Shown here: one piece after another, positions 36,560 through 62,605 of the stretch
Position numbering within the stretch: the stretch's first letter is position 1
Layout of the letters: each line of letters opens with the position of its first letter
Source: Bugula neritina
Lineage: Eukaryota > Animalia > Bryozoa
NCBI GenBank assembly: GCA_964035545.1
Contig: OZ037773.1
Span: forward strand, 1,889,751-1,953,750
DNA: 64,000 nt
Direction of reading: 5' to 3'
Position numbers and translations under genes: made by a program
Notes under the pieces: generated by a model
Databases searched by the model: none
What the model was told of the DNA's origin: nothing
The model's input: only the letters and a program-made list of their open reading frames with translations

Positions 36560-39500
36560 CTATTGACAAACATATTTTCTAATTCTTCTGCATTTGCGTT
36601 TCCCGTTTGGTTTTCTGGCTGTTGGGTGACATCGCTTCTTGGTGATCCATCGGCAGTTGTCCTGTAAGAAAGGGGAAGACAATTACGGTCAGCGCGTTGT
36701 ATGCACTATGATACTAGTAATATATTATTACATTGCCAATAATAATATGTTGTTAGTAATATACTATTATAATATCATTGGTAATATTTTGCTACTAACA
36801 AGTTCACAGATATTTTTGATTCATTATATAGAAGAAAGGATAGTGTTAACCAAACATCAGTGGATGAATTATATTCCCATATAATTATGTTATACAACTT
36901 GAAAGGGTATTGATTGACAGCAAAGAAGCAAATAATTTGTTATGATTAGTTGGTTATAAATAATTTGGATATGTTTCCAAAAAATAGTCGTAATCTTAAT
37001 CCAACGCAGCCTCCAAAGATCTGTGGCTAGGTTAGTGTTTGTTGTGGGCTGAAGCGTTGTGGGTACACCATGCATGTACTGGATATGTGTGCTGTATAGT
37101 GCATAGTATAGTTAGTTATAATGAAAGATATTAATGTGTAGGAGGTGTGGGTGAAGATTTGTGGAGAAAGGCAACTGCACCTTTTATCATTTAATAGAGG
37201 CGACAGACGGACTTTAAATTTATCCAACATAGCCTTTAACTGACTAGTGTACTCTACAACCTGTGCAATATATGACATGATAGCTTTGTAATTTGTAGAA
37301 TATATAATAACTATGCAACTTGTGTAACAATACATAAAATAGTAACTCTTTAATCTGTGTAATATATAATAGCTATACATGTTGCTTATCTTATAACGTA
37401 CTAATTAGTATCTAGTATTGGGATAATAGTTTAGTAATAAACAATGTAATGTAGTAATAAACAATGTAATGTAATAATAAACAAGTACATTGTAGTACAG
37501 TAATAATCAATGTTTTATAGTAACATACAAGTACTTTATACTATAGTAATAGAAAGTGCAATATAGTAATAAAAATGTAATCTATATAAAGTAATAGGTA
37601 TTGCTGTATAGTGATTACAATGTATTATAGCAATATATTATATACAATGTGATATTATCTTATAGAATGTATTACAGTAATAAACAATGTCCAAATAGTG
37701 ATATACAATATAACATACATGTTGTTTATCTCGTAATTTAGACTGTACTAAAGTAAACAGCTATTTACTAGTTACTCACAGTGACGGCAGGTTTACATTC
37801 CTTGTATTTGCAAAAAGAGTTAAGGCAGCACTTCTCTGTGCCGGGGCATTGAGAGTCAAAATCACAGCCTGGGGCATCAGCGATACAATCGCTGCTGACA
37901 AAATCAGCAACTTTTGTGGCTGGGCAGACACCTGTAACACAACTTCCTGTTACACATTGCACACATATGCGTACATACACATTGCACACATACTTACATG
38001 ATTTTGAATACAAAGAAGCATTATATTAAAACTAACCAGGTCTGCGAGTGGTATCCACGCCTTTCACACACTGCTTGCCGCTGCCCCAGTCACAGCACTT
38101 CTCCCCAGTCTTACACTCCTTATCAGAAACACACTCCGGCTGTGTCAACTCCACGTCAAAGAAAAATGGGTATGAAGGGCAGTCCAGCTTTTAAATACAC
38201 AAGTTTTTACTGCATTCACTATAGTCTGAGATATGGACTATATACAATATAGTCTGAGATATGGACTACATAATATAGTCTGGGATATACGCTACAGACA
38301 ATATATTCTGTTATATGCACTATACGTACCTTTGGTTTATCAACACAGACTTCACATACAGGGCCACATCCTTTGCCGTTAGGTCGGTACTTCTTGGTTT
38401 TCTTACAGTCGGGTGATGGAGGGGGCGGACAACCTCTCTTAGTGCACACCTATTAGCAGTTACAATGATATCTTATCTGCTCTTAACACTGATAGACTCT
38501 GACATAACTAATAATAATAGTATTTCTATCCTAACATTCCAGAAAGTTCAGTTGAAACCACTCTGATGATACATGATGGAAATATGCTGCTGTGAAAATC
38601 AGCGGCTGTCAACAGTGTGAATCAAGTTGACCTGTGAATCACCTTGACCTACTAGTCATCAATACACAACAAAGGTCAAATGTGCTTTTAATTATAAGGT
38701 CATTGAAAAATGCTAAGTCATGGAGGCAATTCATTGTACTTAATATCAATCACCACACTGCACCAACATTTGCTTTCTCACAATTTGTATTAGTACCCAA
38801 ACTGTGCCAACATCTCCCTTCTCACAGCATTTTTTACTACGCACTCTGCACCAACTTCTGCCTCCTCACAACTTGTATTACTACTCACACTCACACACTT
38901 CTACAGTGTCATCAAAGCTGTGTTTTAAACTTCAAAATCTAATACAATAATATCTAAACTATGGAACAAATGCAGATAAAAAGAGTTGGTTTGAATACAG
39001 CTCTCACCTTGGGGGGTTTGGGGTCCTTACAGACTCGACAAGCTGGCTCACAACCCTCTCCATTCGGATAAACTATTTCTACATTTGTACAGTTCAGTCC
39101 AGCTGGAGGGGCAGCACACCCTTTCAGTGTACAGATCTTTGGGGGCTGCAGAAAAAAAAACATAAAATGAAGTCGAAATTTTACAACTTCAGAAAATCCC
39201 ATTTAAGCTACAGTCTTTGGATGTAATTGATCAGCAGCATCAATACCTGAGTAGGAATTGGTTGGACAGCCAGAACAGGGGTTGGCGCTCTACACTCCTT
39301 GTAAGGGCAGCCGTCAGCTCTACAACACTTCTCATCACCTTCACACTGTGAGTCGTATCTACAGCCGACATAGTCCATTTTACATGTACGGGAGCTGCCT
39401 CTAGGAGCAGGACCTGGGCACACTCCTATGGAGAAGGAACATAGAAATCAAGACTGCGATGGGATGGGTCTGTTTAGATGATTGAAATCTTTAATTGCTG

Positions 39501-42500
39501 TTAGTTTTATACATAGGTTTTGGTGTACTTGAAGATTGCTACCTAAAACTCACCTGCTTTGGCAGTCATGACTAGTCCAGTTTTACACTGCTTTCCTGCG
39601 CCCCAGAAGCAGCATTTCTCTCCACTCCTACAATCAGAGTCGGTCGTGCACACGGGTTGACTGACAGGGACGTTGAAGTAGAAAGGGTACGGGGGACATG
39701 CTAGATTCTACAAGAACAACAGAGCTCCTGCAACAGATTGCTGAATAACAGCATATATGTTATCTCGACTCTAACTCTCATATAGACAGACAGCGACAGC
39801 TCCTTGGGCTGTATACAACTTACTGAGTAGGGAAGAAAGGAGCTTGAAAGATCAGAAAATAGAGAGTTTATTGTGCAAGTAACACTGAATAAGGGTAATA
39901 GCTTAAACTCTCATCATAGGGAGTGGAAGTGCAAGTAACACTCAAATGAACTAGTAGCGTAGACTTACATCTCTGGAAGGTGGAGTTGTAGGTTTCACTT
40001 CCGTATCATTACAGACTCTACAAACTGGATCACATCCTGGACCATTTGGTCTAACTTCTGTCACATTCTGGCAGTTAGGACCAGGTTCTGGACCACAACC
40101 AATCTCTGTGCAGGCCTACAATTTAGATATTTAGATGAACACACAATTTTAATGGTTCATCAAAAAGCATCTAAAGTTAAAACTCTATCTGACAAGTCCA
40201 AAACTGTCTACTAGACAGGCATCAGATTCGACACTCAACTGTTCATAAGCTAAACGTTAGACGAATCTGGAGTCACCTAAACTAACGACATTCCTGCTAC
40301 ACAACGATCTTGTATTTGTACTTGCAGAGTATCAATACCTGAGGGGGAATTGATCGAAGAGCTAGAGTAGGGGTTGGCGCTCTACACTCCTTGTACGGGC
40401 AGCCGTCAGCTTTACAACACTTCTCATCACCTTCACACTGTGAGTCATATGTACAGCCAACGTAGTCCATTTTACATGTATGGGAGCTGCCTGTGGGAGC
40501 AGGAACTGGGCACACTCCTATGGAAAAGGAACGTACAAATCAAGACTGCGATGGGATAAGTCTGTTTAGACGATTGGTATCTTTCATTGTTGTCAGTTTT
40601 ATGCATAGGTTTTGGTGTACTTGAAGATTGCTGCCTAAAACTCACCTGCTTTGGCAGTCATGACTAGTCCGGTTTTACACTGCTTTCCTGCGCCCCAGAA
40701 GCAGCATTTTTCTCCACTCCTACAATCAGAGTCGGTCGTGCACACGGGTTGACTGACAGGGACGTTGAAGTAGAAAGGGTACGGGGGACATGCTAGATTC
40801 TACAAGAACAACAGAGCTCCTGCAACAGATTGCTGAATAACAGCATATATGTTATCTCGACTCTAACTCTCATATCGACAGACAGCGACAGCTTCTTAAG
40901 TTGTATACAACTTACTGAGTGGAGAAGAAAGGATCTTGAAATATCAGAAAATAGAGAGTTTATTGTGCAAGTAACACTGAATAAGGGTAATAGATTAAAC
41001 TTACACCATAGAGAGTGGAAGTGCAAGTAACACTGCTATGAACTAGTAGACTTACATCTCTGGAAGGTGGAGTTGTTGGTTTAACTTCCGTATCATTACA
41101 GACTCTACAAACTGGATCACATCCTGGACCATTTGGTCTAACTTCTGTCACGTTCTGGCAGTTAGGACCAGGTTCTGGACCACAACCAATTTTTGTGCAG
41201 GGCTAAAATTAGAAAGAACACACAATTTCAAAAATTATTGAGAAGCAGATAAGATTGAAATTCAACCTGACAAGTCCACAACTGTCTACTAGACAAGCAT
41301 CAGATTCGACACTCAACTGTTCCTAAATTAAATGTCTAGATTCACTCAAACTAATGACATCCCTGTGACATAATAACCTTGTATTTGCACTTGCAAAGTA
41401 TCAATACCTGAGGAGGAATTGGCTGAACAGCCAGAGCAGGGGTTGGGGCTCTACACTCCTTGTACGAGCAGCCGTCAGCTTTACAACACTTCTCATCACC
41501 TTCACACTGTGAGTCATATGTACAGCCAACATGGTCCATTCTACATCTGTAAGAACTTCCTCTAGGAGCAGGAACTGGGCACACTCCTGTAAAAGAAAAA
41601 CATACAAATCAAAACTACGGCGGGATGAGTCTGTTTAGATATTGGAATCTTTAATTGTTGTCAGTTTTATACATAGGTTTTGGTGTACTTGAAGATTGCT
41701 ACCTAAAACTCACCTGCTTTGGCAGTCATGACTAGTCCAGTTTTACACTGCTTTCCTGCACCCCAGAAGCAGCATTTCTCTCCACTCCTACAATCAGAGT
41801 CAGCCGTACACACGGGCTGACTGAGAGAGACGTCGAAGTAGAAAGGGTATGGGGGACATGCTAGATTCTACAAGAACATCACAACAAACTGCTAAATAAC
41901 AGACAGCGTATGAGCATGTAGCGGTGCAGTAATGGAGAAATTGAGAAAAGCCTGTGTTCTAGATTAAAAATGTAACAAAAGAAACTATGTTTTCGCAAAA
42001 ATATCAACCTGCGCCCCACACCAAAACTTATAAAAAATTCAACGAACTTAAACTATCTCAATTTCTCCACTACTGCTCCTAAATGAGCATATATGACTTA
42101 TTAAATATCAAAGAGGCATCTTATGGTAACAAGTATGTAACTTACGGAGTGGATAAAGGGGACCCTTTTAGCAAATTCAGTCAACTCATGATACAAAAGA
42201 ATTGAAAAATCTTTTTTATGATGCATCGTTGTAATAGCCCCTCTAAGCAGCCAGATATTACGGCACGCCAAAGCTTTATTTGAAAAAATTGACTGCTAAT
42301 GCTGCTGCCAGTTTCAGTATAAAAATAATTTTTAGAATGTATTACAGTTGTTGACAGCTGGGGCTAATAATGTGATGACCTTGTGTCAACTCTATCAAAG
42401 CTGGCTATTGACTTTCCAGTTTGACATATAGCATTTTACAACTTTAGTCTTACAATTCTAACCTTACAACTCAGTTTAAAACTCAAGTCTTATTCACTAA

Positions 42501-62100: not shown

Positions 62101-62605
62101 ATGGTTGTTTTAGCCATTTCTGTGGTGGTTTTGTCAACCATTTCGGTGGTGGTCGTTACAGCCATGGTTGTTTCAGCCATTTCTGTAGTAGTTTTGTCAG
62201 CAATCTTGGTGGTGGTTGTTTCAGCCATGGTTGTTTCAGCCATTTCTGTGGTGGTTTTGTCAGCCATTTTGGTGGTCGTCGTTACAGCCATGGTTGTTTC
62301 AGCCATTTTTGTGGTAGTTTTGTCAGCCATCTCTGTGGTGGTCGTTTCAGCCATTTCTGTGGTAGTTGTGTCAGCCATCTTGGTAGTGGTTGTTTCAGAC
62401 ACCTTTGCAGAGAGATTTTAGATTGAAAACATACGTTAACAAATAAATAAAATTCTAGTGTAACATGTTTAAGAAATACCACTACACTAAGCTGTTGTGG
62501 AAGCTAACCAACTGTATAAGTGGTGCAGAAAATTACTCTCACCTGAGAGACGCATCCTGCTATGATTGATAGACCAATCAGCAGTGTCCAATACTGTGAC
62601 TTCAT
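59104..62605 (-). CDS. Secreted protein, copy B (~510 aa): tandem paralogue of copy A with a 241-aa Thr-rich stalk and a truncated tail
   Basis: Exons 62605-62543 (same signal peptide), 62402-61680 (MAETTTTK/MADKTTTE repeats), 61267-61127, 60861-60721, 60481-60350, 60181-60041, 59828-59691, 59166-59104 (QPEAVDLEDEVTTTPGLDKI*). Its non-coding exon 1 would lie just beyond the window. Confidence 0.85.

Follow-up and report, generated by a model that had tools for sequence, protein, structure and literature searches.

Antistasin/hirustasin domains (PF02822) are small six-cysteine secreted modules that begin with C-x4-C, place an Asp/Asn-Gly turn before the fourth cysteine, are often repeated in tandem and are tied to protease inhibition. 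ShKT/SXC domains (PF01549) hold six cysteines in approximately 36 residues and end in C-x3-C-x2-C. In the mucin-plus-SXC proteins of Toxocara, SXC domains are arrayed beside Thr-rich mucin stalks, and the resulting proteins are secreted to the surface. The N-terminal IGFBP domain (PF00219) is rich in Cys, Gly and Pro and closes with C-x2-C, and the WAP domain (PF00095) is repeated in multi-WAP inhibitors such as SLPI, elafin/trappin, perlwapin and crustins. Each of these systems shares features with a three-gene cluster of the bryozoan Bugula neritina. The cluster lies in a stretch of 64,000 nucleotides (assembly GCA_964035545.1, contig OZ037773.1, positions 1,889,751 to 1,953,750), which is called the window here and to which plain coordinates refer. 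Genes A (36560-46794), B (50063-54642) and C (59104-62785) are all located on the minus strand and are built on a six-cysteine module, PNG, that is named after its invariant P-N-G motif. How does the PNG module relate to the described domains? Judged by its sequence, PNG is a real, uncatalogued domain family. We consider it probable that the cluster consists of three intact genes for secreted proteins that use this module, with gene A encoding a multi-headed inhibitor or antimicrobial protein and genes B and C encoding polycationic arrays on stalks.

The PNG module covers approximately 35 residues with the signature C-T-x3-C-x7-9-C-x2-V-x4-P-N-G-x2-C-x-P-x-C-x2-C-x-D. A six-frame motif scan of the window returned exactly 16 intact modules. 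They occupy the minus strand from 38345 to 61252 in groups of six (38345-44436), five (51871-53359) and five (59709-61252). All 16 follow C-x4-C-x7/8/9-C-x12-C-x3-C-x2-C with P-N-G, and all 96 cysteines are retained. In the 16-module alignment, the columns without variation are the six cysteines, P-N-G, the proline after the fourth cysteine and the aspartate after the sixth. The first-pass annotation had given the same overall spacing and motif but had limited the interval between the second and third cysteines to 7 or 8 residues. This interval is 9 in modules B5 and C5 and 7 or 8 in the others. Each module exon is its own short open frame, with an acceptor AG located 3, 12 or 15 nt before the first cysteine and a donor GT located 12-45 nt past the last one, always at a multiple of 3. 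Because these distances are multiples of 3, the module exons are symmetric with phase 0/0. AG and GT borders enclose every module exon except that of module B5 (15 of 16). The scan and the reading of the borders agree with the earlier count of 16 phase-0 exons on one strand (6+5+5), and both example peptides quoted with that count are present. Once joined, the exons yield three uninterrupted open reading frames of 18 (A), 11 (B) and 8 (C) coding exons that contain no stop codon or frame error, and the internal borders are all AG/GT save the acceptor of module B5. Each of the three frames opens with a hydrophobic signal peptide. The remaining matches of the motif scan, at 17.1-17.6 kb, were rejected as modules and belong to a 21-bp simple repeat. 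Several frames of this tandem repeat (17121-17567) read CSTQCIV or CTTCYTL, which mimics the cysteine motif.

The PNG module was compared with known domain families at the sequence level. Neither single modules nor all 31 aligned modules exceeded a Pfam threshold. The weak Pfam rows were IGFBP for 6 of the 31 modules (best E 0.007), one C1-like_CT and one UL42. A profile search of PDB sequences with the modules gave no chain at E<=10. In scans of the genome, PF02822 detected at least 21 true antistasin domains and PF01549 at least 67 ShK domains over the cut-off, and the IGFBP model detected four domains; none of the three models hit a PNG exon even at E<=10. Furthermore, the PNG profile was compared by hhalign with aligned genuine antistasin, IGFBP and ShK domains from the Bugula neritina genome, and the resulting probabilities were 1.6%, 0.7% and 0.6%, respectively. 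The unrelated-pair control (antistasin versus ShK) gave 0.8%, and the positive control (PNG modules of the genome versus those of other sources) gave 99.2%. Thus, given the lack of profile similarity to known domains, the module stands as a separate family by sequence.

The predicted structure of the module was also examined. AlphaFold models of modules C2 and A2, based on alignments of 31 and 35 sequences, have mean predicted local distance difference test (pLDDT) values of 85 and 89.5, respectively, with approximately 95 in the A2 core. Both models lack a helix and agree on two short strands, the first immediately ahead of P-N-G and the second across the fifth and sixth cysteines. The module is predicted to fold into a compact disulfide-locked knot around one short beta-hairpin. 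In the predicted fold, P-N-G follows the first strand, and the Pro-rich or Lys-rich loop between the second and third cysteines is the variable, exposed part. With both models, Foldseek against the PDB and VIA-align against 48,161 representative chains retrieved no match and no hirustasin or antistasin chain, a negative result that is weak for a module of approximately 40 residues consisting mostly of coil. A shape search of the ESM Atlas ranked two bacterial hypothetical clusters (Chloroflexota and Actinomycetota, ~155 aa) at the top for both models, with template modelling (TM) scores by query of 0.58-0.65 over 38-45 residues and root-mean-square deviations of 2.0-2.9 Å, values that have little meaning at such a length. 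CCN, VWC and IGFBP rows of the Atlas (TM ~0.4) appeared for the C2 model, were not repeated with the A2 model and were discarded. The ESM Atlas feature search yielded no usable match. The module had been introduced as unrecognised, and a match in Pfam, PDB sequences or PDB folds, which was sought as a refutation, was not found.

Gene A encodes 898 residues in 18 coding exons. The protein begins with a signal peptide and continues with four triads, each composed of a PNG module, a 6-Cys WAP (WAPa) and an 8-Cys WAP (WAPb), which are followed by two PNG exons, a fifth WAP pair and a 4-Cys terminal exon. WAPa exons run from phase 0 to phase 1, and WAPb exons run from phase 1 to phase 0. The features of gene A are as follows.

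46785-46794, minus strand, TATA-like box TATAAATAAG of gene A (sequence reading)
end at 46734, minus strand, putative non-coding exon 1 of gene A, AAAAG/gtgagt (sequence reading)
46451-46565, minus strand, exon 2 of gene A: 5' untranslated region from AAAAATCTGT, ATG at 46510, 20-aa signal peptide, phase-0 donor
46556-46564, minus strand, AAAATCTGT at the start of the signal-peptide exon of gene A
44293-44439, minus strand, PNG exon A1
43023-43828, minus strand, WAP pair 1: WAPa 43828-43663, WAPb 43237-43023; same type as the WAP exons that match PF00095
42696-42848, minus strand, PNG exon A2, AlphaFold model with pLDDT 89.5
41408-41867, minus strand, WAP pair 2: WAPa 41867-41714, WAPb 41586-41408
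41056-41202, minus strand, PNG exon A3
40339-40799, minus strand, WAP pair 3: WAPa 40799-40646, WAPb 40517-40339
39969-40115, minus strand, PNG exon A4
39247-39707, minus strand, WAP pair 4: WAPa 39707-39554, WAPb 39425-39247; PF00095 E 9.7e-10 and 1.4e-06
39008-39145, minus strand, PNG exon A5
38330-38449, minus strand, PNG exon A6
37780-38187, minus strand, WAP pair 5: WAPa 38187-38037, WAPb 37931-37780; PF00095 E 4.5e-07
36560-36661, minus strand, terminal exon of gene A: cationic 4-Cys peptide (C-x7-C...C-x7-C) and stop

Three WAP exons of gene A were run against PF00095 and scored 39, 28.9 and 30.5 bits (cut-off 20.8 bits), and the remaining seven have the same cysteine pattern as these three. 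The 6-Cys WAPs are missing two of the usual eight cysteines. Four of the 8-Cys WAPs (43023-43237, 41408-41586, 40339-40517 and 39247-39425) contain Cys-X-Met after the second cysteine, with X being Leu, Arg, Lys and Lys, respectively, and the fifth (37780-37931) has Cys-Ile-Ala instead. The terminal 4-Cys exon was considered as a degenerate PNG module and rejected: it contains "PNG", yet its hidden Markov model score of -0.8 is not significant. Two simple repeats lie in the introns of gene A. A 67-bp tandem repeat (~10 copies, 94% matches, 45795-46443) fills much of the intron between the signal peptide and A1, and a (TA)93 run at 43333-43518 separates the two exons of WAP pair 1.

Genes B and C combine the module with a different partner. 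Gene B encodes 419 residues that comprise a signal peptide, a 65-aa Thr-rich mucin stalk, five PNG exons and a four-exon acidic tail. Gene C encodes 513 residues with a signal peptide, a 241-aa Thr-rich stalk, five PNG exons and a 20-aa acidic tail. Their features are listed below.

54400-54642, minus strand, 5' end of gene B: TATA-like box 54642-54633, putative exon 1 ending at 54577, signal-peptide exon from 54479 (ATG 54462) to a donor after 54400
54471-54479, minus strand, AAAATCTGT at the start of the signal-peptide exon of gene B
53783-53977, minus strand, mucin exon of gene B: 65 aa, 46% Ser+Thr, 24-bp tandem repeat
53234-53374, minus strand, PNG exon B1, charge +12
52804-52944, minus strand, PNG exon B2, charge +12
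52433-52564, minus strand, PNG exon B3, charge +10
52159-52299, minus strand, PNG exon B4, charge +8
51853-51990, minus strand, PNG exon B5, charge +12, AT in place of the acceptor AG
50063-51323, minus strand, acidic tail of gene B: four phase-0 exons 51323-51234, 51018-50914, 50337-50275 and 50113-50063 (stop), net charge -10 in total
62543-62785, minus strand, 5' end of gene C: TATA-like box 62785-62776, putative exon 1 ending at 62720, signal-peptide exon from 62622 (ATG 62605) to a donor after 62543
62614-62622, minus strand, AAAACCTGT at the start of the signal-peptide exon of gene C
61680-62402, minus strand, mucin exon of gene C: 241 aa, 44% Ser+Thr, 63/126-bp tandem repeat, net charge -20
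61127-61267, minus strand, PNG exon C1, charge +12
60721-60861, minus strand, PNG exon C2, charge +12, AlphaFold model with pLDDT 85
60350-60481, minus strand, PNG exon C3, charge +10
60041-60181, minus strand, PNG exon C4, charge +9
59691-59828, minus strand, PNG exon C5, charge +12
59104-59166, minus strand, terminal exon of gene C: 20-aa acidic tail, net charge -5, TAA

The stalks consist of Ser/Thr-rich tandem repeats located behind the signal peptide (44-46% Ser+Thr), as in mucin-type stalks, and their O-glycosylation is a prediction. Charge is segregated along the proteins. The B and C modules carry +8 to +12 within 44-47 residues, the tails -5 to -10 and the C stalk -20, and the gene A modules range from -3 to +5. 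At their 5' ends, the signal-peptide exons start alike, as proposed in the first-pass annotation, with AAAATCTGT in genes A and B and AAAACCTGT in gene C (its "copy B"). That annotation had granted a TATA box and a non-coding exon 1 to only two of the genes, but each of the three shows a TATA-like box and a putative exon 1. Genes B and C differ at two borders. The sequence before module 5 is ttgcag in gene C versus ttgaat in gene B (AT at 51991-51992). Exon B5 may be skipped, which would keep the frame because the exon is of phase 0/0, or may use a weak AG 9 nt inside it as the acceptor. At the position of the gene C TAA, gene B has TCT and continues into three more acidic exons. Between the gene B tail exons lie degenerate copies of the tail exon; a copy near 50.8 kb is out of phase, and another near 50.5 kb has lost its donor. 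In an independent DNA run, gene B is covered and shows no rearrangement.

The module also occurs outside the cluster. Two more loci of the Bugula neritina genome contribute at least 11 modules, which brings the total to at least 27 copies at three loci.

G000:C7:532716-535196, second locus, nine modules in two long exons with no introns between the modules
G000:C5:3289935-3292584 (near 3.29 Mb), minus strand, third locus, two divergent PNG-like modules (FPNG, C-x2-C-x2-C end)

The second locus is arranged as a 6-Cys WAP and an 8-Cys WAP with a Pro-rich linker and four PNG modules, followed by a 6-Cys WAP and an 8-Cys WAP with a linker and five PNG modules. Its modules have x2 instead of x3 between the fourth and fifth cysteines. 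The statement that each module occupies one exon therefore holds for the window cluster but fails at this locus, where the nine modules stand head to tail. At the third locus, one module is followed by a Ser/Thr/Pro-rich repeat of TTPPSHVSV units. The module recurs with WAP domains or with mucin-like stalks.

Beyond this genome, a profile search of 1.84 billion representative proteins at E<=0.001 gave 23 matches, of which approximately 18 were true modules on reading and five were dropped as repeat or low-complexity proteins. The sole named relative is XP_067941130.1 from the bryozoan Watersipora subatra, which carries the automatic name "keratin-associated protein 16-1-like". The alignment of XP_067941130.1 with gene A spans the whole protein (E 8e-98). 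Domains in the Watersipora protein follow the order WAPa-WAPb, WAPa-WAPb, PNG, WAPa-WAPb and then the same 4-Cys ending as gene A. Every other relative is a fragmentary gene call from an ENA or Logan contig, and labels such as BRYA16-1...METAG occur among them. These contigs show the same PNG/WAPa/WAPb neighbourhood, and one contains PNG with a mucin stretch. The DNA of two relative-bearing contigs has no close match in the Bugula neritina genome, and both contigs thus derive from other taxa or lineages. A word-indexed search with the Watersipora module region returned only the query itself, and one with the module alignment returned only unnamed ENA fragments. As far as these searches reach, the module is lineage-restricted, apparently to bryozoans, and the only named relative is bryozoan, in line with the lineage specificity first suggested for the cluster.

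How did the family expand? Genes B and C are tandem duplicates of approximately 8 kb that share 75-97% identity, introns included. Modules Bn and Cn pair one to one with 84-97% amino-acid identity, indicating that the five-module array predates the B/C duplication. Across the five exon pairs, the proportion of synonymous differences (pS) is 0.121 and that of non-synonymous differences (pN) is 0.035, with a ratio of 0.29, and every cysteine is kept; three of the four introns between the modules are just 75-81% identical. The B and C modules thus appear to be under purifying selection, which argues for function in both copies. In gene A, the triads share 89.5% DNA identity over 1.58 kb, and modules A1, A3 and A4 are 97-100% identical in amino acids. 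The gene A triads are, from their sequences, recent duplicates. The family would have grown by both exon and gene duplication, with the PNG/WAPa/WAPb triad repeated within gene A and the five-module array duplicated whole to give genes B and C. The two architectures that had been noted on symmetric phase-0 exons, with WAP pairs or with a mucin stalk, are both seen, and they fit exon duplication or shuffling.

What might the three proteins do? An extracellular defence, antiprotease or matrix system had been proposed at the outset. The Cys-X-Met position after the second cysteine of the 8-Cys WAPs corresponds to the scissile-bond site of SLPI and elafin. On the basis of this SLPI/elafin-like site, gene A is read as encoding a multi-headed WAP-type serine-protease inhibitor or antimicrobial protein. 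Between the WAP pairs, the PNG modules of gene A may serve as additional binders or as rigid spacers. Genes B and C would present five polycationic PNG modules on an O-glycosylated stalk, and such an array may bind polyanions, either microbial envelopes or an acidic or sulfated matrix, at the animal surface. Several points weigh against this proposal. We infer function from domain context and charge alone. The gene models are read from DNA, and the one public run in which the stretch is present consists of genomic DNA and contains no exon joints. Module B5 has no canonical acceptor, and independent contigs of a DNA run show the same letters. The restriction to bryozoans comes from one profile search at E<=0.001, below which divergent single modules elsewhere could score. 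Finally, fold searches are near-blind to domains of 40 residues that are mostly coil, so that a lack of matches neither establishes a new fold nor rejects a remote relationship to small disulfide domains, those of the antistasin type included.

Genes B and C could alternatively encode polyproteins that are cut by proprotein convertases at the basic linkers (PPKKK, PPKRK and TPRKK) into cationic six-Cys antimicrobial peptides of ~40 residues, with the acidic tail and the mucin part neutralizing the peptides before processing, like defensin propieces. Cationic peptides of such a length with six cysteines are a frequent antimicrobial format. The high positive charge of the B and C modules, the Lys/Arg runs located directly before the first cysteine and the opposite charge of the tails and the C stalk all agree with such a processing scheme. 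However, the modules of gene A and of the second and third loci are neutral or acidic and are not antimicrobial-peptide-like, so cationicity is a local specialization, and the mucin stalk suggests an intact, tethered glycoprotein. We therefore regard a polyprotein as unlikely.

A structural role, in which the proteins are Cys-rich, cross-linkable parts of a cuticle, an adhesive or a skeletal organic matrix and both WAP and PNG serve as matrix modules, strikes us as doubtful. WAP proteins occur in mollusc shell matrices and biomineral proteomes, and pairs of Lys-rich cationic and acidic domains recall coacervate-type marine adhesives. The keratin-associated name that NCBI assigned automatically to the Watersipora homologue points in the same direction, but this name reflects just the richness in Cys and Pro. 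Moreover, the 8-Cys WAPs keep the inhibitor-like Cys-X-Met with a variable X, which fits inhibition better than a purely structural role.

A bolder version of our proposal holds that PNG is a new disulfide-knot fold confined to Bryozoa, that its loop between the second and third cysteines is tuned to different activities and that the polycationic B and C arrays represent a new class of effectors, tethered by mucin to the colony surface and acting against microbes or fouling. We consider this version rather improbable.

Could PNG instead be a stretched, very divergent antistasin/hirustasin-type domain and hence a canonical serine-protease inhibitor itself? An antistasin-like identity had been suggested for the module at the outset as one of two options, and PNG does adjoin WAP inhibitor domains. 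The agreement is limited to the six cysteines, the x4 first interval and the Asn/Asp-Gly turn before the fourth cysteine. The antistasin domains of the genome follow C-x4-C-x3-C-x10-C-x2-C-x-C, whereas the PNG intervals after the first are x7-9, x12, x3 and x2. Every later loop could simply be longer in PNG. However, the PNG signature (C-T, P-N-G, C-x-P-x-C and C-x-D) is absent from the antistasin domains of the genome, PF02822 finds these domains and no PNG exon, and the hhalign probability stays at the level of an unrelated pair. The fold searches, weak as they are at module size, also yielded no hirustasin or antistasin chain. An antistasin-type origin is thus highly doubtful, and the suggested identity is not upheld.

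That the exons are decaying remnants or assembly artefacts, as the missing B5 acceptor and the degenerate tail-exon copies in gene B might indicate, is scarcely credible given three long open reading frames without a stop or frame error, a pN/pS of 0.29 with 96 of 96 cysteines kept, a full-length homologue in another bryozoan family and an independent DNA run that covers gene B unrearranged.

We return to the reading of three intact genes that use a module family of its own. Bryozoans are a phylum that has received little study and is known for its symbionts, its fouling and the chemistry of its surfaces. A six-Cys module that is restricted to one phylum and has a confidently predicted fold would be a new entry for domain catalogues and merits a Pfam entry and a structure. 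The module is employed both beside WAP inhibitors and on mucin stalks, and it is a compact scaffold that carries a single hypervariable loop. The cluster also provides a clean, datable case in which symmetric phase-0 exons have spread a domain. Secreted Cys-rich modules that are specific to a lineage are common in invertebrate genomes, and the finding is solid, not startling, until a function is shown. Elsewhere in the window, an open frame at 32076-32411 (plus strand) has strong TPR matches (TPR_10, E 4e-19) and is unrelated to the cluster.

Among the described systems, the ShKT domain resembles PNG in its ending. C-x3-C-x2-C closes all 16 window modules, and the copies at the second and third loci end in C-x2-C-x2-C. 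The ShKT domain is helical, whereas both PNG models are predicted to contain a beta-hairpin only and no helix. The IGFBP N-terminal domain differs by its 12 cysteines and its GCGCC motif, which is absent from PNG, and the IGFBP matches of the modules all fall below the 28-bit cut-off. The literature searched on bryozoan or Bugula WAP and Cys-rich proteins contained nothing relevant, and a strict alternation of PNG, 6-Cys WAP and 8-Cys WAP was not found in it. The multi-WAP inhibitors resemble gene A through its WAP domains, four of which have the SLPI/elafin-like Cys-X-Met. Like trappins and crustins, gene A joins WAP to a second, family-specific Cys-rich or repeat module. In gene A, however, this partner is the PNG module and not cementoin, a Gly-rich region or the 4-Cys crustin region.

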